The position numbers and the translations under genes were made by a program. Below the pieces are notes generated by a model. The model saw nothing but the letters and a program-made list of their open reading frames with translations. It did no database searches and was not told the origin of the DNA. Below, in pieces: positions 5,788-63,396 of a stretch of 64,000 bases of DNA (positions within the stretch are counted from its first letter, which is position 1; each line of letters begins with the position of its first letter). The stretch is taken from positions 62,001 to 126,000 of the IMG/VR virus record IMGVR_UViG_3300044997_001199; one strand, written 5' to 3'.

Positions 5788-6387
5788 TTATGATATAGGG
5801 TTTTCCGTGATCTTGCAAGATCTAAGATCGGGATATTGGTGATATTTAGGGACCGGATCAACCCGGGGAAGTTTTTCAAGTCCCATGGCTGCTTCCTCAG
5901 GATTCATTTTGTAGTGGTAGCCCACGTAGAATGTCTGCTGATCTTGCCAGGGCACAATGCTGAGATCGCGCCCGTCGTATCGTTGCAGGCGCAGACGCTG
6001 ATATGCGTCCGGGTCGTCCAGCAGGATCGCACCACCGCGTCCAATTTCCAAAGGTTTGCCGCGTCCAAAACTCACACACTGCATCTGACCAGCACGATAC
6101 ATGCCAGGCGCCAACAGTCGTGCAGAGTCCCAGATCCGAGTGCCATGTATGGGATATTCACCCAGCCACTCGTGGTCGAGATAGGAATATCCGATACTCA
6201 GTTTGTGCATGACCATGGGCACCGACAGATAGGTAAACGCAGTGAATTGTACGTACTCAGGACGTTCGTACCGCAAGCAAAGTTCAAGTGCATGAGTACA
6301 GCAGTCCGTGGCAATGGCAAAAGGCGCACCGGTATAGTCACACAGTGCCTGTTCAAACTGTGCGATGGTGGTAAAGTTTACTTCCAA
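5788..6387 (-). CDS. DegT/DnrJ/EryC1/StrS-family PLP aminotransferase (short form)
   Basis: ATDCCTHALEL, WDSA and SFGRGKPLEIGRGGAI (PLP lysine), GYHYKM; only 199 aa. Confidence 0.8.
   Translation of the reverse strand: MEVNFTTIAQFEQALCDYTGAPFAIATDCCTHALELCLRYERPEYVQFTAFTYLSVPMVMHKLSIGYSYLDHEWLGEYPIHGTRIWDSARLLAPGMYRAGQMQCVSFGRGKPLEIGRGGAILLDDPDAYQRLRLQRYDGRDLSIVPWQDQQTFYVGYHYKMNPEEAAMGLEKLPRVDPVPKYHQYPDLRSCKITENPIS
5790..5818 (-). promoter_or_regulatory. Sigma70-type promoter for folE-queD
   Basis: TTGCAA-17 nt-TATCAT on the minus strand, about 40 nt upstream of the folE ATG; GGAG RBS at 5753-5756. Confidence 0.55.
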
Positions 6388-18593: not shown

Positions 18594-18765
18594 TTGATGG
18601 AGTTTTCCTTGGTGCGGCGTTCATATATTTAGTGGAATCCAGCATCCTGCGCTCGATCGCTGCAGCGCCCAGGGGCCGAATCACGGTAGCTACCGAACCA
18701 CTGACAGTGTCACTGACCGTGGCGCCCGGGGATGTTGATTCCAGAATTTCATACAGTCTCATCAA
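18580..18765 (-). CDS. Small hypothetical (virion-type) protein
   Basis: MRLYEILES start typical of these head-associated peptides; overlaps its neighbours. Confidence 0.55.
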   Translation of the reverse strand: MMRLYEILESTSPGATVSDTVSGSVATVIRPLGAAAIERRMLDSTKYMNAAPRKTPSNARK

Positions 18766-29784: not shown

Positions 29785-30429
29785 TTATTTAGTCTGTATG
29801 GGCATGGTCTTTCGGATTAGACCAGGCACAGCCAGGCTCAGCAATATTAGATCCCCCTGATCATAGTGATCTACGAAATAGTAATTTCTGATATAATGTT
29901 GTCGACTTTTGAAAATATGCTGTTGTAGAGATTGGCTTGGACGGTATCGATCGGCGTTCGATTCGAGAAAGTTTTTCAATGTCTGAGATTCTCTGGGATC
30001 CAGATATCGTTCGCGAAAAAAAGTCCTGAATCCATACCGAGATCGTTTTTTAATCACCACACCTGCTGGACGATCCAGCGTGACCTTTCCGGCCCACAGA
30101 CAGACCACGTTTGTCTGAGAAATCACAGTGGTCAAAAACACTGGGTCATTGGAATAGAGATAGAGATAGTCTATCTGACAAATTTTTTTGAATGGGTCAG
30201 TACTAGCCAATAAAAGATCGCACAGCTGATGCATTCGTTTGACTCGATCCTCGTCGATACGATGGCGATTCCAGGGAAAGCCGATGCAAGTATTTCGATA
30301 CAGCACCATCTCATCTATGGCATTATGGTCCAGTTGTCTGAGAACGCACACATCAGGAACATAACATCGTATGCCACAGAGGTATCGATTGAAATATAGT
30401 GAGCTGCGTGATTCGGGCCTAAATTCCAT
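29785..30429 (-). CDS. Hypothetical protein
   Basis: Probable start MEFRPES overlapping the ClpA stop. Confidence 0.6.
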   Translation of the reverse strand: MEFRPESRSSLYFNRYLCGIRCYVPDVCVLRQLDHNAIDEMVLYRNTCIGFPWNRHRIDEDRVKRMHQLCDLLLASTDPFKKICQIDYLYLYSNDPVFLTTVISQTNVVCLWAGKVTLDRPAGVVIKKRSRYGFRTFFRERYLDPRESQTLKNFLESNADRYRPSQSLQQHIFKSRQHYIRNYYFVDHYDQGDLILLSLAVPGLIRKTMPIQTK

Positions 30430-32695
30430 TGTCTCTGGGCGGCAACTGAATGACGTTGTAGGACTGAGCATGATTCACTGGGTCGATATCAAAGATCACT
30501 TCGTTGTCCAGCATCCTGGCAGTGACCGAACAGTTTTCTAGCTGATCAAACAGGATGCGACGGCTCAGTGGTACTCGGATCAGTTCGTCGATCTTTCTGC
30601 TCAAGGGCCGTGCTCCCATCTTGTGATCATAGCCCTTTTCGGCCAGATAGTCGATCACTGGCTCGGTCAAGGTCAATCGTATTTGACGACCGGCAAGACT
30701 GGTCTTGAGATCTTCTACGAACTTGACCACAATCTTCTTCACTGCCAGTTGATCCAATTTCCGGAACTTGCAAATCTGGTCGATGCGATTGCGTAGTTCG
30801 GGACGGAAAAATTCTCGTAGCGCACGATCTTCTTCGCCGGTCTTTTCCAGATCCGATGAAAATCCAATGTTGTTGTTTTCGTTGTCACGAGCACCAAGAT
30901 TGGAGGTCATGATGATGATACAGTTTTTGACATCCACTCGCTTGCCATTGTTGGAACTGACATGTCCTTCGTCCAACATCTGCAGCAAGATGTTAGTGAC
31001 ATCCGGGTGTGCTTTTTCGATTTCATCAAACAGCAGCACCGCGAACGGATTTTTATTGAGATCGCTGATGAGTTTGCCACCGCCCACAGTGCCATCTTCG
31101 AAACCAACATAGCCCGGAGGTGCACCGATGAGGCTACTCAAGGTATGACGTTCTTGATATTCGCTCATGTCGTAACGCAGCATCTTCATGTTGAGATTTT
31201 CCGCCAGTAGTTTGGCCAACTCAGTCTTACCTGTGCCCGTGGGTCCAAGAAACAGGAAGCTGGCCATGGGTCTGGTAGTAGGGCCGATGCCCGCAAAGTT
31301 GATATACACTCGTTCCAGCACACGATCCACGACATCGTCCTGTCCGTAGAGTCTCTGCTTGATGTTGCTTTCGAGATCAACGATCTTGGCACTGCGCTCG
31401 TTCTGCAATTTGTCTGTGGGAACTCCGCACACTCTTGTGACCTGTTCCTGGATCATGGCACGAGTGATCGTGACATTGCCCTGATCTTTTACACGTTCTC
31501 GAGCACAGGCACCGTCCAGGAGATCGATGCTCTTGTCGGGATTTTTGCGATCATGCATGTAGCGAGTGGCATATTCCACTGCTGCAGTCATGGCCTCGGT
31601 GTCGATCATGACATTGTGAAACTGTTCCAGGCGCGGACTGAGACCAATGAGTATCTGTTCTGTGGTCGCAGCATCGGGTTCGTCGATGCCCAGACGATAG
31701 AATCTGCGCATGAGTGCGCGATCCTTTTCAAACGACTCGTGATATTCTTCCCAGGTAGTGGATGCAATGACCTTGAGATTGCCGCGGGTGACCGCTGGCT
31801 TCAACATGTTGGCAAAATCAAGATTGCTGTTGGAACCCGAGCCTGCACCGCGCATGGTGTGTGCTTCGTCGATGAACAACACACACTTTTTTTTGTTTTC
31901 CAGTGCTGCTATGACCAATTTGAACTTTTCTTCAAATTCGCCGCGGTATTTGCTGCCGGCCAGCAAGCTGCCAACTTCGAGTCCCCAGACTTCGTGGTCT
32001 TTCAGAAACTCTGGTACTCGACCGGCCATGATTTCCTGTGTAAGGCCTTCCACGATGTGTGTTTTGCCCACACCGGGGTCGCCTACCATGAGCACATTGG
32101 CTTTGAATCTGCGAGCCAAGACCGTGATCATTTCTTGCAGTTCGTGACCGCGACCGATCATGGGCTCGAGACGATTCTCTGCAGCCATTCCTGTGAGATT
32201 GGTGCAGTATTCGTTGAGTATCTCTGTGGCCTGACTGGCAGTCAACTTGGCAGTGTTTGATCCTCGGTCGTAGGTTTTGGTCCAAAAATCCACGAACTCA
32301 TTTTTCTTGACACCATACTTGAGCAAGAAATAGTGAGCATGACTGTTGGTTTCGCTCATGATACTGAGATAAAGATCGGCCGTGGTCAGGTTTCGCCGTC
32401 CGGTAAACATGGCCTGCACATTGGCGCGATTGAAGATGCGTTCCAGTGTCTGAGTTTTTTTGGGCTGGAAATCTTCTGAGTTTTTGACCAGGCCCGCCAG
32501 GCTGTCGATATAGGCTTCGATTTCTATATCCAACAACTCGATTTCCACTCCAAATTTTTCTAGAGTTTTGCGGAACGGTTGATAGCGTATCAGAGCCAAC
32601 AACAGGTGCTCAGTTAACACATATTCATGCTGTTTGTTGCGAGCAATCTTGGTAGCTTCTTCGACGATGGCTTCGATTTCGTGGTTCGGGTTCAT
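30419..32695 (-). CDS. clpA: ClpA-like AAA+ chaperone/protease subunit
   Basis: Clp N-domain, Walker A motifs GDPGVGKT and GPTGTGKT, IGF ClpP-docking loop, no long M-domain. Confidence 0.9.
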   Translation of the reverse strand: MNPNHEIEAIVEEATKIARNKQHEYVLTEHLLLALIRYQPFRKTLEKFGVEIELLDIEIEAYIDSLAGLVKNSEDFQPKKTQTLERIFNRANVQAMFTGRRNLTTADLYLSIMSETNSHAHYFLLKYGVKKNEFVDFWTKTYDRGSNTAKLTASQATEILNEYCTNLTGMAAENRLEPMIGRGHELQEMITVLARRFKANVLMVGDPGVGKTHIVEGLTQEIMAGRVPEFLKDHEVWGLEVGSLLAGSKYRGEFEEKFKLVIAALENKKKCVLFIDEAHTMRGAGSGSNSNLDFANMLKPAVTRGNLKVIASTTWEEYHESFEKDRALMRRFYRLGIDEPDAATTEQILIGLSPRLEQFHNVMIDTEAMTAAVEYATRYMHDRKNPDKSIDLLDGACARERVKDQGNVTITRAMIQEQVTRVCGVPTDKLQNERSAKIVDLESNIKQRLYGQDDVVDRVLERVYINFAGIGPTTRPMASFLFLGPTGTGKTELAKLLAENLNMKMLRYDMSEYQERHTLSSLIGAPPGYVGFEDGTVGGGKLISDLNKNPFAVLLFDEIEKAHPDVTNILLQMLDEGHVSSNNGKRVDVKNCIIIMTSNLGARDNENNNIGFSSDLEKTGEEDRALREFFRPELRNRIDQICKFRKLDQLAVKKIVVKFVEDLKTSLAGRQIRLTLTEPVIDYLAEKGYDHKMGARPLSRKIDELIRVPLSRRILFDQLENCSVTARMLDNEVIFDIDPVNHAQSYNVIQLPPRDNGI

Positions 32696-43279: not shown

Positions 43280-43437
43280 GACAGTATTTATGGGTTGCGA
43301 CAATTCCTGGGGTTTTTGGTCTAAAACCTGCCGAGCGAAATATTTAGTCGAGATCTTGACTGAAAACTGTGCCTATTAAATTCGTGGCAGTGTCTCTTTA
43401 AATACCTGCGTTGTACCATCCCAAAAGGAGAATAGTC

Positions 43438-52600: not shown

Positions 52601-53983
52601 TTCAAATCTCACCGCAGCACCTACGTATAAATCGGCACGGGTCGCAGTGTCACAGATAATAACATCGCCTGCGGCCTGCGTGGAACTACACACCACGCTT
52701 CGCGAGCGTACCTGTATAAAAAAACTATAGGTAGTTTCTGTGATCCCCACATCGGGGATAGTTCCATAGTACCACCCCGAATACGGATCCAGTTCCAGTC
52801 CCGGAGGAAACCCAAAACCCTGATTTACCGAAATCGCATATTCCACTTGTTCGGTGTCATAATCCTCTCCCACAAAGCGGTAGGCAAAATTATTTTCACT
52901 ACGTATTATACCAATGTTAGATGGTTCTGCATTGAGCAAAAAAGGTGCGCGATTGGGAGTTCGATCGGCTGTAACAAACGTGGTATCGGCCGTGATGTAA
53001 GTGTCGTCGGCTTTGAGATTGTCACGGTTGTACACATAGATGGTATAGGTTCTTAGATTTGAAGATTTTCCGTCGGTGATTTCTAGTATGAATTGATAAT
53101 TTTTACTGATAGCCGAAGAAATAAAATCGTATGGTTCGGTTTCCAGCGACGTAAGGTCATACCCAGGCGGTTTGTTTACATCCGGGAATGGTCGGATATA
53201 ACCATGAATGCGTCCAGTGCTTGACAATTTGAGACCCAATGGCAATTGTCCGCTGATCAATCGTATCAATACCTCATCGCCAAGATCGATTTCGGTATAT
53301 TCAATTTGTATTTCTACTTGATCGCCGTCGTAAAAAGTTCCGATGCTGCCAGCCGGTGTGATAAAATCAGGAACATCGTTACCGGTCACGGTCAAGGTAA
53401 AGGTTCGGTCGGCAATGCTGTCAATTACTACCACACCACGCACGGTGCGCTGAGTATAGGCACGAATGGTAAATTTACTGGTAATGTTTTGGCTGACCTC
53501 TAAAGGAACCCCCTGCACGAGGACCATAGGAGTTGGTACCCCTTCCATGAGACCGTTGCTGGCTATCTGGATTCCCTGCGGAAGAGTGCCGGCCTGGAGA
53601 CGATAAAACACTCCCGGGCCAAATCTGGCGGTCATAACACCGGTGGCATCAGTCAATGCCACCGGTCGCGATGCATCCAGTGAGGTGGCAACCGAAAATG
53701 TAGTAGAGCTGGGAACACTGAACACAAAGTAATTGGTATTTTCAATCAAGCCGCCAAAAGTTTCTCCAAAAAATCTCACTGTGAGTCCCGGCGTTACTTC
53801 CAGTGTGGTATCACAGGTTATGAGATTGTTGGTCAATGATGTGCCTGTGCAGTTGGCTGGTATGATCTGATACGGCACTGATACCGATAGTGTCTGTTTG
53901 AAAAACACTCCCTCGGGTATGATACCAAGGCTACCTGCAGGAGTTTGCCAAGTTAGTTGTGTCATGATCAGACGTTGATCCAA
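49658..53983 (-). CDS. Baseplate wedge-like protein with Ig-like repeats (start probably 53965)
   Basis: W.TPAGSLG/LP.GL.L...G.I.G Ig-type repeats and C-terminal DKYL.FP. Confidence 0.7.
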   Translation of the reverse strand: MDQRLIMTQLTWQTPAGSLGIIPEGVFFKQTLSVSVPYQIIPANCTGTSLTNNLITCDTTLEVTPGLTVRFFGETFGGLIENTNYFVFSVPSSTTFSVATSLDASRPVALTDATGVMTARFGPGVFYRLQAGTLPQGIQIASNGLMEGVPTPMVLVQGVPLEVSQNITSKFTIRAYTQRTVRGVVVIDSIADRTFTLTVTGNDVPDFITPAGSIGTFYDGDQVEIQIEYTEIDLGDEVLIRLISGQLPLGLKLSSTGRIHGYIRPFPDVNKPPGYDLTSLETEPYDFISSAISKNYQFILEITDGKSSNLRTYTIYVYNRDNLKADDTYITADTTFVTADRTPNRAPFLLNAEPSNIGIIRSENNFAYRFVGEDYDTEQVEYAISVNQGFGFPPGLELDPYSGWYYGTIPDVGITETTYSFFIQVRSRSVVCSSTQAAGDVIICDTATRADLYVGAAVRFEGTSIGGITLGQTYYVSSIVGDTQFQISESFLGTVFNLTNGTIGANQYLFCVPNDISASQLYPFSLTIAGNIDREVIWQTDADLGAVENGSVSLLRIQAENRGGRDLVYELASGAFNELPQGLTLLPTGEISGRVTFNTFSVDLGATTFDRAIGAMGSTGRSKLLKKDAIGESDMDEDYDHDEYDEDYDHDEYDEDYDHNEYDEEGEAAQDTITRLEPTTVDSTFRFTVNAYAEDTSQPLFKVSAVKVIDGGQGYVSTPSITFSEPVGAAAIQAAATVTVQGGVIQAINVTNPGAGYTGTAGFTVTGVGTGADLRVIMQSTGVRRVVSAFKTFTVRVVRAYNKPYQNLYIVAMPPDNDRALLESLLTDTDIFVPEYIYRPDDPYFGVSQRVQYEHAVGLAPEQLLTYVQSLDLNHYWKNLVLGPIQTARAVDSQGQIIYEVVYCPVIDNLVNDQGRSVSKIVTLPYAIRDPRDGSTVINSVYPNSLINMRDQVVDVVGQISQKLPLWMTSRQENGQVLGFTPAWIVCYTNPGRSRQIAYYIDTQFGQRFNTIDFKVDRYVLDSSMSRNWDSRAQSWTPAPNLTTFDRIDTAGFTELGTVNVCTELALFDVNGRTIEYINSLGGLDGFTRIAVPGQTPPPGTKIILREGSKIIFVKQESFDRFPNTNDAFIENITWYDENGFDSADTDVTPGSYDYGVVVPGGSQSICIETAAATDTITADSTLGMIPGNKVWFTGTTFGGISRVTNSGATQVYYVHSVASVTGTATFSILNTIVVDSTADLAVDDQVWFPDQTIGGIPPLNTDGVRRAYYILSITGNQIQIGTTPGGSPVLLTNESGDMTINLKKFSVSQQPNAPSPLALSNDTGVMAVNYDNNRMAIYTIHILNDGILELELDLQTVANDYVTSSQGSKYPAGALLYHPGQPVGTLSRVNWQPLIAATAVITLETTFDHNSLQFIEPVDMYDPTDEYDKYLVFPKINILA
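51990..52078. repeat. 27-nt tandem repeat (about 3.3 copies) encoding DYDHDEYDE
   Basis: Unit tcttcgtcgtattcgtcgtggtcgtaa, with one mismatch in copy 1. Confidence 0.9.
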
Positions 53984-56619
53984 CCAGTTCCGGTCTTGAA
54001 GAGTCTCAGTCGGTCCGATGTGGTGTTAAAATAAAATGCACCATTTACTGTGACTTCTGGGTCGACCGAACTAGTGGGTATGACCATGTATGGCCCGGTT
54101 ACCAGTATCACTGCAGCAGTGATGTTTCCGGTGGCCGATACCTGGCCTGCTGTTCGTAGATTGCCACCCTGTATGTTGCCGGTGGCACTGAGAGAAGACA
54201 GGGTTCCCACCGAAGTGACATTGGGCTGTGCATCTGTGAGCAATGTCCCAGCGAGGTTGGTTGCATTGACATTTCCACCGGTGATGTTTCCTATAGCCGA
54301 CAACAACCCAGTGATTTGTAAATTACCGCCTGATATGTTGCCGATAGCAGTTATTGTTGCACCTGTTACCAGCTGCGTTGATATAACATTGGCACCAGTG
54401 ATGTTGCCTGTGGCTGTGACCAAACCACCGGTGACCAGGTTGGCACCAGTGATGTTGCCTGTGGCTGTGACCAAACCACCGGTGACCAGGTTGGCACCAG
54501 TGATGTTGCCTGTGGCTGACACAGTTAGGCCAGATATCAATGTGTTAGCAGTTATTGTATTGGCTGTGACCAAACCACCGGTGACCAGGTTGGCACCAGT
54601 GATGTTGCCTGTGGCTGTGACCAAACCACCGGTGACCACATTGGCACCAGTGATGTTGCCTGTGGCTGACACAGTTAGGGCAGATATCAATGTGTTAGCA
54701 GTTATTGTATTGGCTGTGACCAAACCACCGATGACCAGGTTGGCACCAGTGATGTTGCCTGTGGCTGACACAGTTAGGGCAGATATCAATGTGTTAGCAG
54801 TTATTGTATTGGCTGTGACACTGGTGTTGGCCACTACAGATTGTGATTCTACATTGCCCAGAGCTATGTTACCAAAGTTGTTTACGGTGATCTGATCGCC
54901 GATGACCGTGACTTCCAGTGCTGCGATCAATTTGTTTGTAGAATTTCTGTAACCAACAAATGCTTGTTTTTCGGTCGAATTGAAATAAAAGAGTTGATGT
55001 CCACGGTCTTTGAAATCATTACCGAGTAGAGCCGAGTTGTTGGCACCACGACCAATGGACGGTATTGAGTCGGTGACATGCAGGCTATCTAGGTTTAGAT
55101 AACCGTTGGTACCCGTGACACACAAACTGCCAGACAGTGTAGTTGTACCTGCGGAGAGATCTCCCGAAGTTGCAAGATTGCCACCAACCATTGTTCCGCT
55201 GACCGAAAGAGTGCCCGTGGAAAGTATATTGGCCCCTTGCAAATTGCCAGTAGCACTTACAATACCCGCAGCCAACAGGTTACCGGCGACAACGTTGGCC
55301 AGGGAAACAATGTTGCCTGGGATATTTGCAGCGCCCGATAATGTCAGATTACCGCCGGTGATATTGCCAGCGATCGACGCATAGCCCGATGCCAATACAT
55401 TACCGCCCGCACTGATATTGGCTGCAGCAGCAATGAGTCCACCTGTGCCAATGGATGCCGCGGTCACCGAACCTGCTGCACTGATCACACTGTTGCTAAA
55501 AATACCGGAATTGGCACTGATCAGTCCCTGGGTCAGGACATTTGATGCCAACAGGTTGCCAGACAATATCGCACCAGCAGCAATAACTTGATTTCCTGCC
55601 GAAACATTGCCAGTGACACTGACCAGCGCCGCAGTGACCTGTGTGTTGGCATTGACATTGTTGGCTGCGATATTACCATCCACTAGGTTGGCTGTGATAT
55701 TGCTTCCTGAGATATCGCCAGAGAATACTCCGGTCACAGCCGACACTGTGCCCACTGAAACAAGATTGCCGCCGCTCACTGTTCCGGTTACTGACACTGA
55801 CGAAGCAACTGCGACATTGTTAGCCGATATGTTTCCTGTACCGCCCAGGGCATTGCTTACCGTGAGATTTTCCAGTATGCCAACACTGCGTAGGCCACTG
55901 TTTAGCACATTGGCACTGAGCGTGGTTCCGGTGAGCAATGCAGCATTGCTGCTGACTGAAATGCCTGTGAGCAAAGATCCATTGCCCACAAAGAAAGACC
56001 CAGCGACATTGCCGCTGGCCGAAACATTGCCCATTAGGCCGATGTTGCCTGTCAATGACATGTTGTCTGCAGATATATCGCCAGCGGCATCAATGTCTCC
56101 GCTGCTGTTTAAATTTTGTGCAGAAATATTTCCCGAACTTGAAACCGTTCCTGCAGTGAGAATGTTACCACCAGTGACGTTGCCGGACACAGAAAGGTTG
56201 GCTAAGGTTCCAACTGCAGTGAGCGTGGAAGTGGTGACATTGGCACTGAGCGTGTTCCCAGTCAACTGTCCTGCTGGGGACTGCGATGTTATGCCAGTCA
56301 GTGCACTGCCGTTGCCGATAAACAGTCCCGATGCCGTGATATTACCGGTGGCCGATATTGCAGAATTTGCGATCAAGGTCCCGGCCACCGTGGCTCCTGT
56401 GCTGGAAACTATCACCACATTGGAAACTCCGGTGCTGCTTATAGTCACTATGGAATCTTGTACTATCTGTATGTTGGAAGTACCATTGGCTATACCGGCC
56501 ACACCACCGATGTTGTAAAGTTCGCCAAAATTGTCGTTCACTATAGTGAACGCGGTCCTCAACGGATCACCGGTACCGTCGTTGGCCGCATTGCCTATGT
56601 CTATAAATTGCTGTGGCAT
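53968..56619 (-). CDS. Tail fibre/baseplate protein with beta-helix repeats
   Basis: N-terminal IG..ANDGTGD.LR.AF (T4 gp9/gp10-like start) and many SATGNITGAN repeats. Confidence 0.78.
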   Translation of the reverse strand: MPQQFIDIGNAANDGTGDPLRTAFTIVNDNFGELYNIGGVAGIANGTSNIQIVQDSIVTISSTGVSNVVIVSSTGATVAGTLIANSAISATGNITASGLFIGNGSALTGITSQSPAGQLTGNTLSANVTTSTLTAVGTLANLSVSGNVTGGNILTAGTVSSSGNISAQNLNSSGDIDAAGDISADNMSLTGNIGLMGNVSASGNVAGSFFVGNGSLLTGISVSSNAALLTGTTLSANVLNSGLRSVGILENLTVSNALGGTGNISANNVAVASSVSVTGTVSGGNLVSVGTVSAVTGVFSGDISGSNITANLVDGNIAANNVNANTQVTAALVSVTGNVSAGNQVIAAGAILSGNLLASNVLTQGLISANSGIFSNSVISAAGSVTAASIGTGGLIAAAANISAGGNVLASGYASIAGNITGGNLTLSGAANIPGNIVSLANVVAGNLLAAGIVSATGNLQGANILSTGTLSVSGTMVGGNLATSGDLSAGTTTLSGSLCVTGTNGYLNLDSLHVTDSIPSIGRGANNSALLGNDFKDRGHQLFYFNSTEKQAFVGYRNSTNKLIAALEVTVIGDQITVNNFGNIALGNVESQSVVANTSVTANTITANTLISALTVSATGNITGANLVIGGLVTANTITANTLISALTVSATGNITGANVVTGGLVTATGNITGANLVTGGLVTANTITANTLISGLTVSATGNITGANLVTGGLVTATGNITGANLVTGGLVTATGNITGANVISTQLVTGATITAIGNISGGNLQITGLLSAIGNITGGNVNATNLAGTLLTDAQPNVTSVGTLSSLSATGNIQGGNLRTAGQVSATGNITAAVILVTGPYMVIPTSSVDPEVTVNGAFYFNTTSDRLRLFKTGTGWINV
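54389..54820. repeat. Near-identical 51-nt and 99-nt internal tandem repeats
   Basis: ttggcaccagtgatgttgcctgtggctg recurs six times. Confidence 0.85.
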
Positions 56620-56684
56620 AATGTTGTCCTATCATCTATTTACCAAAATGACCAGGTTCGGTAAATACGCAGCAGGAGCAAAAC

Positions 56685-58055
56685 ATGCCATATATCATAA
56701 ACAACAGTCGTGGAGACGTTATCGCAGTTGTGGCCGATGGCACGGTAAACACCAGTGCTACTCCACTGACCTTAGTAGGCAGAGCTGTGACCAGTTACGG
56801 CGAAGCTGAAAACGAAAACTACGTGTTCATCCTAGAAAATTTTGCCAACTCGGCAGCTCCTCTGCGTGCAGTGCTAGGACAACTTTGGTACAACAGCGCC
56901 ACCGACATACTGTCAGTTTACAATTTGGCCAATGCATGGGCAGCATTGGCCACAGAGATATACGTACAGGAACAGAAAATATCACCTATATTCACCGGAG
57001 TTCCCGAAGCCCCCACTCCGCCCTCGGGGGACAACTCTGCTCGTATTGCCACCACTGCGTTTGTGCAAGGTGAAAAATTCAGTCCAACCTTTACCGGAGT
57101 GCCAAGAGCACCCACTCCGCCATCCGATACCAACAGCACACAGATTGCTACCACGGCCTTTGTGTATTCAGTGACCGGTACACTGGGAACCATGAGTCAG
57201 CAAAATGCCAATGCAGTGTCTATTACGGGTGGCACTATCGCTGGCATCACTCCGCTGAGAGTGTCCGACGGAGGAACCGGTGCATCCACGGCCCCGGCAG
57301 CGCGAGTCAATCTCGGTGTAGGTACCCTGGGTACTCAAAATGCCAATGCTGTTGCTATCACCGGTGGTACCATTGTCGACATACAAGATCTTGCAGTTGC
57401 CGACGGAGGAACCGGTGCATCCACGGCCCCGGCAGCGCGAGTCAATCTCGGTGTAGGTACCCTGGGTACTCAAAATGCCAATGCTGTTGCTATCACCGGT
57501 GGTAGTATCACCGGCATCGCAGCGATTCCGATTGAGTCTGGTGGAACTTCGGCCACTTCGGCTATCGCAGCTCGTAACAATCTGGGACTGGGTTCTATTG
57601 CTGTGCAAGACAGTGATTCAGTTGCGATCACCGGAGGTAGTATTACTGGCATCGTGCCTTTGCCATTGACTGCAGGAGGCACCGGAGCTTCAACTGCCTC
57701 TCAGGCACGCATCAATCTTGGACTGGGCACCGGAGCCACTGTGAATACCGGTACCATGGCCTTGCAAAATGCCGACGCTGTGGCCATAGTAGGCGGCACC
57801 ATTTCGGGCATCACTCCACTGCCGGTAGCATCAGGCGGTACAGGATCGGCGACCGCAGGCGGTGCATTGAACAATCTAGGTGCTGTTCCAACATCTCGTA
57901 CTGTGACTGGATCCGGTGGACTCGCAGGTGGCGGCGCGCTGACCTCTAACTTGCAATTGACCATCGCCACCGATTCCAATGGGTTCGGGCGCCGCTATGT
58001 ATCAACTTCGACGCCCACCGGCGGAGTCGACGGAGATATCTGGTATCAAATCTAA
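56685..58055 (+). CDS. Tail fibre-like protein
   Basis: YGE..NEN...LENFA, GQLWY, IATTAFV, GGTGA...AR.NLG repeats and C-terminal GDIWYQ; late promoter at 56662. Confidence 0.8.
   Translation: MPYIINNSRGDVIAVVADGTVNTSATPLTLVGRAVTSYGEAENENYVFILENFANSAAPLRAVLGQLWYNSATDILSVYNLANAWAALATEIYVQEQKISPIFTGVPEAPTPPSGDNSARIATTAFVQGEKFSPTFTGVPRAPTPPSDTNSTQIATTAFVYSVTGTLGTMSQQNANAVSITGGTIAGITPLRVSDGGTGASTAPAARVNLGVGTLGTQNANAVAITGGTIVDIQDLAVADGGTGASTAPAARVNLGVGTLGTQNANAVAITGGSITGIAAIPIESGGTSATSAIAARNNLGLGSIAVQDSDSVAITGGSITGIVPLPLTAGGTGASTASQARINLGLGTGATVNTGTMALQNADAVAIVGGTISGITPLPVASGGTGSATAGGALNNLGAVPTSRTVTGSGGLAGGGALTSNLQLTIATDSNGFGRRYVSTSTPTGGVDGDIWYQI
57265..57504. repeat. 105-nt identical direct repeat (57265-57369 and 57400-57504)
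   Basis: Direct comparison; period 135 nt (45 aa). Confidence 0.85.
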
Positions 58056-58058
58056 CAC

Positions 58059-60410
58059 ATGAGAACCATCACACGGCCTGCGGGATATATCGGACAAACT
58101 CAGTATCTCAATACCTTGCCTGTCTCTGTCACAGTGATCGCTCATCTCTGGGGTGGTGGCGGTGGTGGTGGCGGTGGTGGTGGCGGTGGTGGTGGCAATC
58201 GCGACGGTGGGAGCGGCGCCGGGGGCGCCTATAGTCGTGTGACAGTCGAGTTGCAACCACAGGATCTCCTGGGATTGGCAGTTGGTGGTGGCGGTGGAGG
58301 CGGTGCCAGCAGCCTTGATGGACTGGCCTCAGGGGGATCTGCAGGCGGTAGTTTTGTTTTGGCATCAACAAGTTTCAGCGGCGCCAACGGCGGTTACGGA
58401 ACTGCCGGCGGTGGTGGTGGTGGATCAGGCGGTGCCAGTGTGCTGTTTGTCAATGGCACAATCATAGCGACCGCGGCAGGCGGTGCGGGCGGCGGCGGAC
58501 GTGCTGCTGTCAATGGTAACCCATACATAGCTCCAGGTACCACAGGAACCGGTGGTGCTGGAATATATGCCGGGCAAAATGGACAAAACATGCCGGTCGC
58601 AGGTGGCGGTGGTGGCGGTGGCGGTGGGGGTTATCAAGGCGGCAATGGCGGTGCGGCTGCCAGTAACAACGGCGACGGTGGTGCTGGAACCAACGGAGTA
58701 TCATATACCGCCGACGGCGTTGTCGTTGAGAGCTCAGGGCGTGTTCCGGGCAACATCAGACAAAGTTACTACGACGATCGATCGGGATACGGCGGCCAAG
58801 GAGGGTCGCCCGGACAGCCTGGGGGCCGAGGAATCAGCGGATTCATAGTATTGGAATTTTCTTCGTTACCGGGTATCTATGTCAAGTCAGATGGCCAATG
58901 GTATCCTACCAACAAAATTTTCGTGAAGCAGGGAGGTCAATGGAGTTTGGTACAGGATCTATTCGTTCGCGACAATGGAATCTGGCAAGTGACTGCGGCC
59001 ACATCTGGACCGCAGTTACTAACAGATTTTGGCAAATTTGGCGTGGCGCCTCGGCTCTTTGCAGACCCTACGGTTCGATTGACCAGTCTATCATGGAATC
59101 CTGCGTCCACAGTGACCGGGGGAGTATCCACACTGACCTGGCAGACTATTTTTGCTCAATCTGTAGACTATGTAGTGGAATTTTTTCCAGCCCCACCTCC
59201 TCCACCTCCTCCACCTCCTCCACCACCTCCACCTCCTCCACCTCCTCCACCTCCTCCTCCACCGCCACCACCACCGCCGCCGCCCCCACCACCACCGCCA
59301 CCACCACCGCCTCCACCGCCACCACCTCCACCAATAACTGGTAATTTTAACTACCTTGGTGTAGAGGATGGTCCTACTGGTCTGCAATCTACAATTGTAC
59401 TTGGTGTGACCGGTCCAGGCCCCGGGGTCTATGATTACAGTATTATCGGTTCTCCTGCAGTAACATTTGATAATTTTAGCGGAAACCCTCCCATCGGTAC
59501 ATTTAATTGGTTATCTGGGGGTACCGGAGGCAATCAGAGAGCCGTTTGTCGACTGATTACGCCACATGAGGCCACTATATTAACAGCTCGTATCAGTCGT
59601 AGTGGTTATGCTGATTTTACTGAGACTTTGTTTGTGCCCGAACTGATACCACCACCCTCGGGCTCGATATCCTATGTTGTTCCTGGAGTTTATACGTTCA
59701 CGGTTCCCGAACAAACGGCGACTCTAAGAGTCACCTTGTCCGGTGCAGGCGGCGGTGCGGGCGGGCCAGACACTTCAAAGCCAAGCGGAGCCAATGGGCA
59801 GCCGGGACAATTGGTAACTGGTACCATACCAGTTACCCCAGGGCAAAATCTCACTGTCCATGTAGGAGCTGGCGGAGGTTTTGGTATCAGTGGAAAATCT
59901 GCTGTTCCTGGTATTGGTGGATCAGGGTTTGGGACCGGTGGTTCCGGCGGAGCATCAGGCGGTATCGGAGCGTCCGGATCCGGTGGCGGCGGCGGGGGGG
60001 GCAGTGCAGTGTTAGCAGGTGGTGTGGCCTTGGCAATGGCTGGTGGTGGGGGCGGCGGCGGCGGGGCTGGTAAGAATAGTGCTGGCCAGGGAATCCAGGC
60101 CAATATCTATGTGAACGACAAAAACGGCGGCGCAGGTCAGACCAAGGTCGGTGATGGAGGTGGTGGAGGTGGCGGTGGCGGTGGCTCAGCCGGCGGTGTT
60201 GGAGGTGCTGTGCGCAATGGAGACAGCGGTGCATTCTCGGGTGTCACTGGTCAGAGTTTCGCTCCGGGTGGAACAATAAATGCCACTGGAGGGGGCGCAG
60301 GCGGCATCGCAAGTATCCCCAACAACAGCACCGGCAATGGTGCAGCCGGCGCAGTGACCTTGGCCTGGGGACCGGAACAACAACAGTTGTTGTTCCGGTC
60401 CGATGACTAA
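58059..60410 (+). CDS. Glycine-rich tail/receptor-binding protein with 47-Pro linker
   Basis: Two glycine-rich domains flanking a poly-Pro tract at 59193-59333. Confidence 0.8.
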   Translation: MRTITRPAGYIGQTQYLNTLPVSVTVIAHLWGGGGGGGGGGGGGGGNRDGGSGAGGAYSRVTVELQPQDLLGLAVGGGGGGGASSLDGLASGGSAGGSFVLASTSFSGANGGYGTAGGGGGGSGGASVLFVNGTIIATAAGGAGGGGRAAVNGNPYIAPGTTGTGGAGIYAGQNGQNMPVAGGGGGGGGGGYQGGNGGAAASNNGDGGAGTNGVSYTADGVVVESSGRVPGNIRQSYYDDRSGYGGQGGSPGQPGGRGISGFIVLEFSSLPGIYVKSDGQWYPTNKIFVKQGGQWSLVQDLFVRDNGIWQVTAATSGPQLLTDFGKFGVAPRLFADPTVRLTSLSWNPASTVTGGVSTLTWQTIFAQSVDYVVEFFPAPPPPPPPPPPPPPPPPPPPPPPPPPPPPPPPPPPPPPPPPPPPPPPPITGNFNYLGVEDGPTGLQSTIVLGVTGPGPGVYDYSIIGSPAVTFDNFSGNPPIGTFNWLSGGTGGNQRAVCRLITPHEATILTARISRSGYADFTETLFVPELIPPPSGSISYVVPGVYTFTVPEQTATLRVTLSGAGGGAGGPDTSKPSGANGQPGQLVTGTIPVTPGQNLTVHVGAGGGFGISGKSAVPGIGGSGFGTGGSGGASGGIGASGSGGGGGGGSAVLAGGVALAMAGGGGGGGGAGKNSAGQGIQANIYVNDKNGGAGQTKVGDGGGGGGGGGGSAGGVGGAVRNGDSGAFSGVTGQSFAPGGTINATGGGAGGIASIPNNSTGNGAAGAVTLAWGPEQQQLLFRSDD
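60369..60401. repeat. Perfect 15-bp inverted repeat with 3-nt loop
   Basis: GGACCGGAACAACAA-CAG-TTGTTGTTCCGGTCC. Confidence 0.9.
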
Positions 60411-60477
60411 ATTGAATCGCGCAAATATATCAAGTTGTAGTGTCACCCCCGAAACACAGTGTAACTAAATATTTCAT

Positions 60478-61749
60478 ATGTCCTACGCCACAGGAACCAA
60501 TCGTCCTCCCAACAGCAGTGTCAGTCTGGCATTGAATCGGCCTGGCACATACCGCGCAACGGTCACTGCCTACAATGCCGATCGTTCGCAGTCCGTCCAG
60601 GCCACAGCAACAATCATAGTAGCAGATCTACCTCCTCCACCACCTCCTCCACCTCCTCCACCACCACCTCCACCACCGCCACCACCTCCTCCACCACCTC
60701 CTCCACCACCTCCTCCACCTCCACCACCTCCACCACCGCCACCACCTCCCCCACCGCCACCACCGGCTCCTGTAGTGGCTAATTATAGTGGACCAGATTA
60801 CGTATCACAGTTGGACCAAGATCGGTTGTTGCTGATGCCCACTGGTCCGGGTCCCGGTCCTTACACTTACACACTGATCGGCTCACCTGCAGTGGCGTTT
60901 GATACTCAAAGTGGCAACCCTGCTGCAGGCACGCTATTGATTTATCAGACCGCTATGGTCAATCTCATAACACCACATCCCGCGACCACAATAACAGCCA
61001 CAGTAAGTCTTCCAGGCAGCGACGATTTCGTGCAATCAATTGCAGTGCCGGCACGTGACGCACCTTCCGGCACAGTAGAATTTACTCGATCTGACACCAG
61101 TGGTACCTGGACGATTCCGCCTGGCGTAACATCGCTACGGATCACTGTGGTCGGTGGTGGTGGTGGTGGTGCTCCCGGTAGCGAAAAAGACCCATACTGG
61201 TCCGGCGGTGGCGGCGGTGGTGGTGGTGGCATATTGCAAACTACATTGAATGTAATGCCCGGAAACGAAATCCGGTATCAGGTCGGTGCAGGAGGACCAG
61301 GAACCGGACCAGTGGGTTCATCACCAATATACCCGGGCTACTCGGGTACACAATCTTATGTTGAATATCTTTCTACCTATTACCGCGCAGACGGCGGCCA
61401 GGGCGGCGGAACATCCGGTGGTATTTCCCGCCAACATTGGAATACTGGTGGAGCCGGTGGATCCCCGGGCGGAACTGCCGGAAATCCTGGACAATCGCAG
61501 CGCGGAGAAAATGCCAACCGCAATCTCATGCCCGGTGGCAGCGGTGGTAGTGCCAGCCCCTATGGATTTGGTGGCAACGGTGCAACCGGCGTACCGCAAG
61601 GTGGCACTCCAACTGACACCAATACAAATGGTCAACCCGGTACCGGATACGGCAGCGGTGGTGGTGGTGGAGCCGGTGGTAAAAACAATGCACCGCAGGG
61701 TCAGGGCGCAGCCGGATCAGGAGGTTATATCAAGATCGAGTGGGGTTAG
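60478..61749 (+). CDS. Glycine-rich tail protein paralog with 45-Pro linker
   Basis: Poly-Pro tract at 60631-60765; the following domain is clearly similar to that in 58059..60410; TAAATA at 60466. Confidence 0.78.
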
Positions 61750-62066
61750 ATCCCAAAACTCGAACCACAGCCACAGGTCGTGATGGCCTGAGGATTGTTG
61801 ATCACAAAACTGGTGCCCATGGCGTCCTCGCGATAGTCAATCTCAGCACCATGCAAATACTGCATGCTCATGGCATCTACCAGCACTTTGACCGCGCCGT
61901 GATCAAAATCAAAGTCGTCTTCGTTGCGCGTGTCTTCAAATGCAAAGCCGTACTGGAAACCCGAACAACCACCACCCTGCACAAACACTCTCAGCATGAG
62001 ATCAGTGTTGTTTTCTTGGTGTAACAATTCAGTTAACTTGTTGATGCAGTTTTCGGACAGGGTCAT
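61746..62066 (-). CDS. erpA: A-type Fe-S carrier (ErpA/IscA/HesB)
   Basis: GGGCSGFQY and NP.A...CGCGSSF. Confidence 0.9.
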
Positions 62067-62197
62067 ATTTCCTTTCTTGGCCAGGCACAGGCCTTGTCAT
62101 TTTTAATCAGTTTTGATACTACTAAATGGTAACCGGTTGCAGATTGCTAAGTTTTTTGGTTGTTCTCAAGGCAGTATACTTCCACAAATATTTATAT

Positions 62198-62755
62198 CTA
62201 CAACCTTTCGTTGATCACATTCCAATCTATTATTTTCCAAAAACTGTCAATGTACGCTTCTTTGTCCCACTGATATTGCAGTGAATATGCGTGTTCCCAC
62301 ATATCTAAAAGTAGCGCAATGTCGGTGCGCACAGCATGATTGGCAATGGTCTTGATATCGCCTGCAGTGGAAAGGTAAACCCATCCTGATCCTTGTAGCT
62401 TCATGGCAGTTTCCTTCACTGCATCCTGGAATGCTTCATAGGTCTTGAATTTGGATTCAATCAGTTCCAGCGCCGCGCCGCGCGGTCGGTTGCCTGCACG
62501 TGGGGCACGAAACTGTGGAAAAAATCGGTTGTGCAGATAACTGCCTGCACGGTTGAAATCGGCATTGCCTTTACCGGCATTGTATCTTTTTGCATAGCCC
62601 TTGGCCAAGTGATTGTAGTGGTAGTCTATGGTTTCTGCACTCATGACCGGAGCCAAGTCCTTCTCCCCGTAAGGCAGAGGTGTGGTTTCCAATTTGGTTG
62701 GCCGAGTGGTGGCTTCCAGCAAGTCAAGATCATCGCGTATAGTTCGCTGTACCAT
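62198..62755 (-). CDS. Fe/Mn superoxide dismutase
   Basis: LPY...L.P, H...H, HN.FF, GSGW and DMWEHAY. Confidence 0.9.
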   Translation of the reverse strand: MVQRTIRDDLDLLEATTRPTKLETTPLPYGEKDLAPVMSAETIDYHYNHLAKGYAKRYNAGKGNADFNRAGSYLHNRFFPQFRAPRAGNRPRGAALELIESKFKTYEAFQDAVKETAMKLQGSGWVYLSTAGDIKTIANHAVRTDIALLLDMWEHAYSLQYQWDKEAYIDSFWKIIDWNVINERL

Positions 62756-62756
62756 G

Positions 62757-62975
62757 TCAGTTTCTCCGTACAATGCGTCCTCGTGTAAGGTCGTAGGCAG
62801 AAAATTCCATTTCTACTTCGTCTCCTAGCAGTACCTTAATATTGTTCTGTCGCATACGACCACTGAGTGTTGCCAGTGCAATATGCTCGTGACCGTGTAG
62901 TTGTACTCTAAACATCGCACTAGGCAACACATCTATGACCCGTCCAGTGGTTTTTAATACATCTTCTTTACCCAA
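62757..62975 (-). CDS. infA: Translation initiation factor IF-1
   Basis: KED....G.V...LP..MFRV...SGRMR...I....GD.V.....YDLTRGRI; probable TTG start. Confidence 0.92.
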   Translation of the reverse strand: MGKEDVLKTTGRVIDVLPSAMFRVQLHGHEHIALATLSGRMRQNNIKVLLGDEVEMEFSAYDLTRGRIVRRN

Positions 62976-63396
62976 GTGAAAATTCAATCCTCTTTAACCG
63001 ATCCCAACGGAAACTGCGCCATGCATCTTTCTCGCAATCCCATACCACACACACTTCGGGATTGGGAACATGTTCCGTGACAGTATTTACTCGTTTGGCT
63101 CCAAGTATTTCGGAAAGAGTACAAATCATGTGTTTGGCACTGCCATCAGATTTTTCAAATTCAACTGAAACCGCGGTTTCGGTCAACAGTGTGCGCAGCC
63201 AGGTCTTGAAGTCTTCGCGGTCCTGATCCGATGCCCGGCAGTAAAAATTGCCCGGGTCATCGGCCAGTTCTCTCCATGTCTGAGATTGTTCTGAGTTTAT
63301 TGCGATCTCCTTGACCACAAAAAGCAGGCCAACTAGCCAGAAACAGCAGTCGGTCCTACTCATTGAAAAATTCAAAATCCATGCAGTTGATTTCAA
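62968..63396 (-). CDS. WYL_2/SH3-like small phage protein (start uncertain)
   Basis: V.FEK.DG....M.CTL and WD.EK.AWRSFR. Confidence 0.7.
   Translation of the reverse strand: MKSTAWILNFSMSRTDCCFWLVGLLFVVKEIAINSEQSQTWRELADDPGNFYCRASDQDREDFKTWLRTLLTETAVSVEFEKSDGSAKHMICTLSEILGAKRVNTVTEHVPNPEVCVVWDCEKDAWRSFRWDRLKRIEFSLG

Follow-up and report, generated by a model that had tools for sequence, protein, structure and literature searches.

A 64,000-nucleotide stretch of viral DNA (bases 62001-126000 of a 215-kb IMG/VR viral contig; hereafter the window) carries two adjacent fibre genes that share one immunoglobulin-like (Ig) domain. Gene 1 encodes the N-terminal half of this domain (Ig-N) and gene 2 opens with its C-terminal half (Ig-C). 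The two halves are separated by a ~1.3-kb cassette, comprising a polyproline tract, a domain that we term X and a glycine-rich domain, and also by the gene 1 stop codon, the intergenic spacer and the start codon of gene 2. We consider it fairly probable that the halves fold together in trans, so that protein 2 would be docked onto protein 1 and the fibre would fork into two tips. We conclude that a domain was once inserted into a loop, that the gene was then divided, and that this fission is old and has been maintained. The evidence comes from the cassettes, the complementarity of the halves, their conservation and synteny in related lineages, the fold of the tip and the predicted complex. The features of the two genes are listed here, the parts of each protein in their order from the N-terminus (aa, amino acids; nt, nucleotides; E, expectation value; AF2, AlphaFold2).

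58059..60410 (+): gene 1 (P0001), 783 aa, a single open frame with its stop at 60408-60410
58059..58868 (+): glycine-rich domain at the N-terminus of gene 1 (aa 1-270), divergently related to the tip domain
58872..58991 (+): triple GxW beta repeat, gene 1 aa 272-311, kept in orthologues
59067..59186 (+): Ig-N (strands A-C), gene 1 aa 337-376, matching positions 5-37 of the complete-Ig profile (E 1e-8)
59193..59333 (+): polyproline tract 1, 47 proline codons, gene 1 aa 379-425, with 9-nt periodicity
59334..59645 (+): X1, putative Ig-like beta-sandwich, gene 1 aa 426-529, its fold assigned by way of the paralogue X2, which was modelled
59646..60374 (+): tip 1, TNF-like plus glycine-rich, gene 1 aa 530-772, with a WG end (Pfam Gly_rich_2)
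60478..61749 (+): gene 2 (P0002), 423 aa, an open frame with an in-frame stop 9 nt 5' of its ATG
60478..60630 (+): Ig-C (strands C'-G), gene 2 aa 1-51, matching positions 43-84 of the complete-Ig profile (E 4.6e-10)
60631..60765 (+): polyproline tract 2, 45 consecutive proline codons, gene 2 aa 52-96
60766..61056 (+): X2, seven-stranded Ig-like beta-sandwich in the AF2 model, gene 2 aa 97-193
61057..61746 (+): tip 2, TNF-like plus glycine-rich, gene 2 aa 194-423, with a WG end (Pfam Gly_rich_2, Foldseek)

One Ig-like domain divided between two genes

We built a complete-Ig profile of 86 positions from four whole homologous domains, found in proteins P0004 and P0013 of related lineages (see below). 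The Ig halves were searched singly against this profile and folded as two separate chains. Gene 1 halves of three lineages aligned with profile positions 2-37 of 86 (E 1e-8 to 5e-11, in a single-comparison search space), and gene 2 halves of four lineages with positions 43-85 of 86 (E 3e-9 to 2e-12). As judged by these alignments, the halves are complementary and non-overlapping. The two ranges place the break in the C-C' loop, with the cassette of polyproline tract 1, X1 and tip 1 lying between profile positions 37 and 43. The domain is thus not a contiguous one-chain sandwich of ~80-90 aa: its halves belong to different open reading frames (ORFs), in different frames, 1.3 kb apart.

Pfam profiles are matched by the gene 2 half in the same partial manner. 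Residues 11-48 of gene 2 match only the C-terminal halves of the PKD, PKD_4, InlK_D3 and Y_Y_Y profiles, the best match being to PKD positions 45-79 of 80 (E 0.0018; 18.7 bits, under the 23.5 cut-off). Matches of the P0013 N-terminus are likewise confined to C-terminal profile halves. The gene 1 half has no Pfam match, and the complete homologous Ig domains of P0004 and P0013 have no significant Pfam match either. No second Ig-N-like piece was found within the contig. An earlier, preliminary description of this DNA had proposed that one Ig domain is shared between the two genes, and the complementary profile matches, together with the C-terminal Pfam matches of the gene 2 half, bear this out.

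That description had also called for a fold prediction of the halves, which we ran as two chains. In the prediction, residues 328-378 of gene 1 and residues 1-51 of gene 2 make up one sandwich. Each of three runs gave an ipSAE of 0.81, and the highest value among three controls was 0.01. Of 78 solved complexes, 51 attain this ipSAE mark, as do 2 of 108 mismatched pairs. The predicted interface has 170 contacts, with a partner pLDDT of 90 and a contact agreement between runs of at least 98%. The closest predicted pairs join gene 1 residues 370-376 to gene 2 residues 24-30, and gene 1 residues 357-360 to gene 2 residues 14-16; these are the C-F and B-E strand pairings of an Ig sandwich. The prediction supports the proposed binding of the two halves to each other.

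Conservation of the split in diverged lineages

The split is known from four lineages: the window phage, L005, L006/L007 (which are identical to each other) and L008/L009. In the three lineages other than the window phage, the Ig domain is split at the same loop and the gene order is the same. The flanking genes of L006 have ~70-75% nt identity to those of the window. Here, the 771-aa gene 1 orthologue (P0154) has Ig-N followed by two runs of ten prolines, and P0004 starts with Ig-C 15 nt past the P0154 stop. In L005, a 962-aa gene 1 orthologue (P0005) has Ig-N and seven prolines; an ORF 12 nt past it opens with Ig-C and enters prolines at the contig end. In L008/L009, a gene with a glycine-rich end is followed, after an 8-nt gap, by P0013, which starts with Ig-C. 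The IscA-like, superoxide dismutase, IF-1 and WYL genes found downstream of the pair in the window also follow the L006 pair, and the downstream genes are alike in every lineage compared.

The Ig halves are conserved as well as the remainder of the proteins. Ig-C is 52-54% identical in the three other lineages and Ig-N is 54-61% identical to its orthologues, and P0004 and gene 2 have 61% identity. The start of gene 2, M-x-Y-x-S/T-G, is kept in P0004, P0013 and P0155. Conservation of the split across diverged lineages argues for a maintained function at the protein level. The preliminary description had envisaged a ~1.3-kb cassette inserted in the middle of the domain. The cassette does lie between the halves and its insertion is plausible; a fresh insertion is not supported, the split being kept in three other diverged lineages. 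As to uninterrupted homologues, P0004 and P0013 contain complete homologous Ig domains, and scans of viral and metagenome contigs returned no unsplit orthologue.

What follows Ig-C differs among the lineages. In P0004 and P0013, the Ig-C start is followed by two complete Ig domains in place of the second proline tract, so that the spacer is a proline rod in the window and L005 and a pair of Ig domains in L006 and L008. The C-terminal end varies too, being a glycine-rich tip or, in P0013 of L008, an unrelated one. Such a pattern is that of a tag which is conserved and a cargo which varies.

A related arrangement was observed in P0005 (L005:2695-5583), which contains a complete glycine-rich domain nested in its X domain (~aa 445-701) and a second one at its C-terminus. 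The nested domain indicates that loop insertion of modules is a habit of this fibre family.

A proposed forked fibre

In the history that we propose, a head cassette of rod, X domain and tip would have been inserted into the C-C' loop of an Ig spacer, with a subsequent fission into two genes. Gene 1 would give strands A-C before its polyproline tract and gene 2 would open with strands C'-G. One beta-sandwich would be rebuilt from both chains, and protein 2 would thereby be docked on protein 1. Given standard Ig topology, the ends of strands C and G lie at the same pole, so both proline rods would leave the rebuilt domain side by side. Each rod would measure ~14 nm if it forms a polyproline II helix (47 and 45 residues at 3.1 Å per residue) and would bear a head made of an X domain and a TNF-like/glycine-rich tip, yielding a fork with two different heads. 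We infer that the complex forms in the virion, that its geometry is forked and that it binds receptors.

We give slightly less than even odds to a further reading, in which the ~50-aa Ig-C serves as a portable, self-assembling snap for bolting any protein that starts with it onto an Ig-N fibre protein. Related phages could then exchange the second head by substituting the part behind the tag, where proline or Ig spacers and glycine-rich or other tips occur, and the two tips of the fork could read two receptors.

The putative receptor-binding heads

The regions that follow the polyproline tracts of genes 1 and 2 are 39% identical overall and 43-48% identical in their first ~100 aa, which constitute X. 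Among the six-frame ORFs of the contig, X1 and X2 find each other in phmmer at E ~1e-18 (2.8e-18 for X1). This paralogy was seen by MAFFT and phmmer; BLASTP with composition adjustment did not detect it. Both tips match Gly_rich_2 (PF21722) above its cut-off of 24.3 bits: gene 1 at aa 542-770 (E 1.1e-5, 26 bits) and gene 2 at aa 207-420 (E 2.5e-12, 47.7 bits); a search at the DNA level bore this out. The preliminary description had assigned a polyproline tract, a homologous domain and a glycine-rich domain to both genes, and all three are present, with 47 and 45 prolines, respectively. It had further stated that both glycine-rich domains end in WG. This is so for gene 2, which terminates there, whereas in gene 1 WG is followed by a 12-aa tail encoded by a hairpin (see below).

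An AF2 model of gene 2 aa 97-423 reached a pLDDT of 92.9 and a pTM of 0.87. Model residues 4-94 form a seven-stranded sandwich (X2), and the remainder forms a beta-sandwich extending into glycine-rich stretches. The top Foldseek match of this model was 7ypx_A, the Pam3 fibre (E 2.2e-6, TM 0.42/0.53), followed by 9d93_Qa, the Bxb1 tail tip (E 3e-6), and then by LTK/ALK TG domains; 7nx1 and 7mzy matched at E ~4e-3. The presence of X2 in the model accounts for these modest TM values. Among viral models, the matching structures came from numerous phages and giant viruses and were tail-fibre or glycine-rich proteins. In the AF2 model, tip 2 is a beta-sandwich extended by stacked glycine-rich stretches, as are Pam3 gp24 and the TG domains of ALK/LTK. 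Host recognition has been proposed for the TNF-like plus glycine-rich unit of cyanophage Pam3 gp24, which forms the distal part of its fibre (PMC9608196). By their position at the distal end, the heads of genes 1 and 2 may bind receptors as well.

For the head alignment, on which the AF2 model was built, 72 relatives were taken from an exhaustive HMMER search (608 hits). In the X-domain tree, the branches that bear on whether the X1/X2 duplication came before or after the lineage split have support values of 0.62-0.80.

Gene models and the N-terminal part of gene 1

The start of gene 1 lies at 58059, ~1 kb upstream of the start taken in the preliminary description, so that an additional glycine-rich domain and the GxW repeat precede Ig-N. 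Residues 23-85 of gene 1 align with the start of the tip-domain profile (hhalign, probability 96.8%, E 2.5e-10); the N-terminal glycine-rich domain has no Pfam match. The triple GxW repeat (VKxGGxW x3) also occurs as the N-terminal module of many otherwise unrelated small IMG/VR fibre proteins (loci L010-L033), where glycine-rich domains often come next.

The two runs of 45-47 prolines are the only ones of this length in the 215-kb contig. All other proline runs of at least 8 residues in the contig are 8-10 residues long and lie in antisense frames of genes 1 and 2.

Joint Genome Institute (JGI) calls on an identical contig (L003) split gene 1 into small pieces in several frames, and the JGI call of gene 2 covers its last 312 aa only, starting past the proline tract. 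Public protein sets misrepresent the products of both genes. The long ORFs are credible because orthologues elsewhere were called whole, P0154 and P0005 each as a single gene.

The gene 1-gene 2 junction and expression of gene 2

Two features mark the junction between the genes:

60369..60401 (+): perfect hairpin with a 15-bp stem and a 3-nt loop, overlapping the last codons of gene 1
60411..60477 (+): 67-nt intergenic spacer ending in CTAAATAT, 6 nt ahead of the gene 2 ATG

The hairpin is the longest perfect hairpin in the 215-kb contig and is unique in the window (fold z = -3.1). The final 12 codons of gene 1 lie within it; it has no U-run, and a consensus terminator scan returned nothing at this position. 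It is not present at the orthologous junctions of L005, L006 and L008, where the spacers measure 8-15 nt as compared with 67 nt in the window. The long spacer and the hairpin are thus peculiar to the window lineage, and the spacer has no copy elsewhere in the contig. The hairpin may tune gene 2 expression.

Neither gene has a Shine-Dalgarno sequence. The motif CTAAATAT (60465-60472 in the spacer) also occurs at 5842-5849(-), 18625-18632(-) and 43340-43347(-) of the window, 32-95 nt upstream of three other genes. TAAATA occurs at 56662-56667, before the 456-aa fibre gene that precedes gene 1, and before the gene 2 ATG in L006 and L008. The motif, in either form, may be late-promoter-like or may mark an AU-rich start region. 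Runs of 45-47 prolines would be an extreme test of polyproline translation in the host; no gene for elongation factor P (EF-P) was found in the contig.

Alternative explanations

The preliminary description had suggested that homologous recombination between the proline (CCN) tracts deletes or swaps the tip, yielding host-range variation without a recombinase. The geometry would permit this, the tracts being direct, 141 and 135 nt long, 1438 nt apart and in matching codon register, so that a crossover would give an in-frame chimera. Two assemblies (L004 and L005) indeed break within a polyproline tract, although breaks at low-complexity repeats are expected anyway. The longest exact stretch shared by the tracts is 26 nt, compared with a mean of 23.5 nt after codon shuffling, and 101 of 300 shuffles reached at least 26 nt. 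With tract identity at the level of shuffled codons, the tracts show no trace of exchange and offer recombination little to act on. Moreover, L006 and L008 retain the split yet have no second tract, a deletion from tract to tract would irreversibly remove Ig-C and tip 1, and the sole other long contig, which comes from a different sample, agrees at every base over 9.6 kb at the locus. Both cassettes lie on the + strand rather than inverted, and their neighbours are fibre genes and the IscA-like, superoxide dismutase and IF-1 genes, with no invertase adjacent. We therefore regard a recombination switch as very improbable, though rare recombinants may occur. Equally little, or slightly less, speaks for the idea that the two ORFs are joined in translation by readthrough, frameshifting or hairpin-promoted bypass, such that the domain is split only in cis. 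A very strong hairpin does stand at the end of gene 1, and in L006 (L006:2582-2602) both ORFs share a frame, with one TGA and five codons between them. The frame relation nevertheless changes from lineage to lineage (+1 for the window pair, two stops in frame for that of L005, another frame again in L008) and the hairpin is missing from the relatives, and this lack of conservation makes joining hardly credible; nor did we see matched take-off and landing codons or a slippery site.

The split could also be a scar without a docking role, the halves being kept for local folding or for other binding in the virion, and protein 2 being attached elsewhere or not present in the virion. This is unlikely, yet it deserves more weight than the accounts above: the contig is incomplete, the support for assembly is indirect, and gene 2 lies behind a hairpin and has no Shine-Dalgarno sequence. 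A mere scar is difficult to reconcile with halves that remain 52-61% identical while flanking genes have ~70-75% nt identity, or with the retained position of the gene 2 start codon. The halves are also exactly complementary and predicted to fold together, and an unpaired half sandwich would expose its hydrophobic core.

Several points weigh against docking in trans, the reading that we favour. Its support is wholly computational. The ipSAE is the confidence of the model itself, Ig folds are abundant in the training data, and the controls of the two-chain prediction were unrelated proteins rather than halves of other Ig domains. For gene 1 aa 1-378, the quality of the AF2 model (pLDDT 48) does not suffice to tell whether Ig-N stays open. 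Four lineages are too few for covariation. The contig is 61% complete (CheckV), so another partner could lie elsewhere. Lastly, the hairpin and the 67-nt spacer without a Shine-Dalgarno sequence, unlike the junctions of the relatives, mean that gene 2 expression is not assured.

Neighbouring genes and source virus

A fibre-shaft gene lies directly upstream of the pair:

56685..58055 (+): upstream fibre-shaft gene, 456 aa, matching 17 PHROG tail-fibre families (best E 5e-21)

Its stop is 3 nt ahead of the gene 1 ATG. It is the first gene of a conserved three-gene fibre block, and its C-terminus also precedes the gene 1 orthologue in L006. In an adjacent 883-aa repetitive fibre-like gene (53968-56619, -; compared with L003:1107-3752), two samples are set apart by exactly one repeat unit of 51 nt (17 aa), which is a copy-number polymorphism. 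Convergent to gene 2 (61746-63396, -) are auxiliary genes for an IscA/HesB-like Fe-S protein, an Fe-type superoxide dismutase, an IF-1 homologue and a WYL_2 protein. Past the window on the downstream side, L003/L004 carry genes for a cell-wall hydrolase, an NAD synthase and a Bax1-I protein. Elsewhere in the window (30419-32695, -) lies a gene for a 758-aa ClpA/ClpB-like ATP-dependent protease ATPase (phrog_4871, E 4e-232).

The source virus is an uncultured jumbo myovirus of the GAP32/CBB/Atu_ph07 kind. The family-B DNA polymerase of the contig has 42-49% identity to those of the jumbo myoviruses Phosso, Atu_ph07, XbC2, GAP32 and CBB, and a T4-type clamp loader is encoded on the contig. Searches of deposited phages with megablast and tblastn gave no match to the locus, and word-index protein searches returned the self-match alone or nothing. 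Scans of viral and metagenome contigs gave no additional relatives of the X domain or the Ig halves, one of them finding just the widespread GxW repeat. Sequence searches of the PDB gave low-complexity proline/glycine matches only.

Comparison with known systems

The invertible G segment of Mu (with Gin) and C segment of P1 (with Cin) have inverted repeats, oppositely oriented cassettes and an adjacent invertase. The present locus resembles these switches in placing two alternative C-terminal fibre parts side by side. It differs in having two direct cassettes, each of them a complete ORF, with no recombinase adjoining them and with repeat identity at chance level.

The tip resembles that of Pam3 gp24 (PDB 7YPX; PMC9608196), in which a TNF-like beta-sandwich passes into a lattice made up of glycine-rich stretches at the fibre's distal end. 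Pam3 gp24 is a trimer with a helical N-terminal shaft and depends on a chaperone, whereas the present tip stands behind an Ig-like X domain borne by a polyproline rod, and the analysis identified no chaperone gene. Gp38 of Salmonella phage S16, which is grouped with Pam3 gp24 and the ALK/LTK TG domains as a comparable system, was not among the listed Foldseek matches of tip 2. Like phiKp24 (PMC9700779), the window phage is a jumbo myovirus that apparently displays several receptor-binding heads on one fibre system. Known branching in jumbo phages uses dedicated N-terminal anchor domains of trimeric proteins, whereas we propose a shared, divided Ig domain. If correct, this would explain a second, different head on a jumbo-phage fibre without a dedicated anchor domain. 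It would also provide a rule for finding partners in metagenomic phages, namely orphan half domains at ORF ends, and a small non-covalent tag/catcher pair for protein engineering.

Chaperone-usher pili assemble by donor-strand complementation, in which an incomplete Ig-like fold is completed by a strand of the neighbouring subunit. Complementation of an Ig fold in trans is likewise known for myomesin and obscurin-like-1 (PMC5222588). The joint predicted here would resemble both in that an incomplete Ig-like fold is completed by another protein to form a stable non-covalent joint. In pili and in myomesin/obscurin-like-1, however, a single strand is donated, whereas here each partner would contribute about half of the sandwich (3-4 strands); there is no sequence relationship. 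Split Ig-like domains have been described in the RTX adhesins Aeromonas AhLap, Vibrio FrhA and MpIBP (PMC12077191, PMC10865825). As in these adhesins, the Ig-like spacer of a fibrous adhesin has a ligand-binding module set into it, so that the module is held away from the spacer, and the insertion step of our proposed history equals the arrangement termed a split domain there (PMC12077191). The setting is a type I secreted protein in the adhesins and a phage fibre here. In the adhesins, the chain returns and the fold is completed in cis; in the window, a stop, a spacer and a new start intervene, and a second polypeptide with its own head is needed. The literature searched describes such cis split domains and single-strand complementation, and we found in it no half-and-half Ig joint in a phage fibre. 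If our reading is correct, the gene pair encodes a natural two-piece Ig domain that serves as a joint between phage receptor-binding proteins, intermediate between bacterial adhesins, whose split domains are completed in cis, and pili, where one strand complements the fold.

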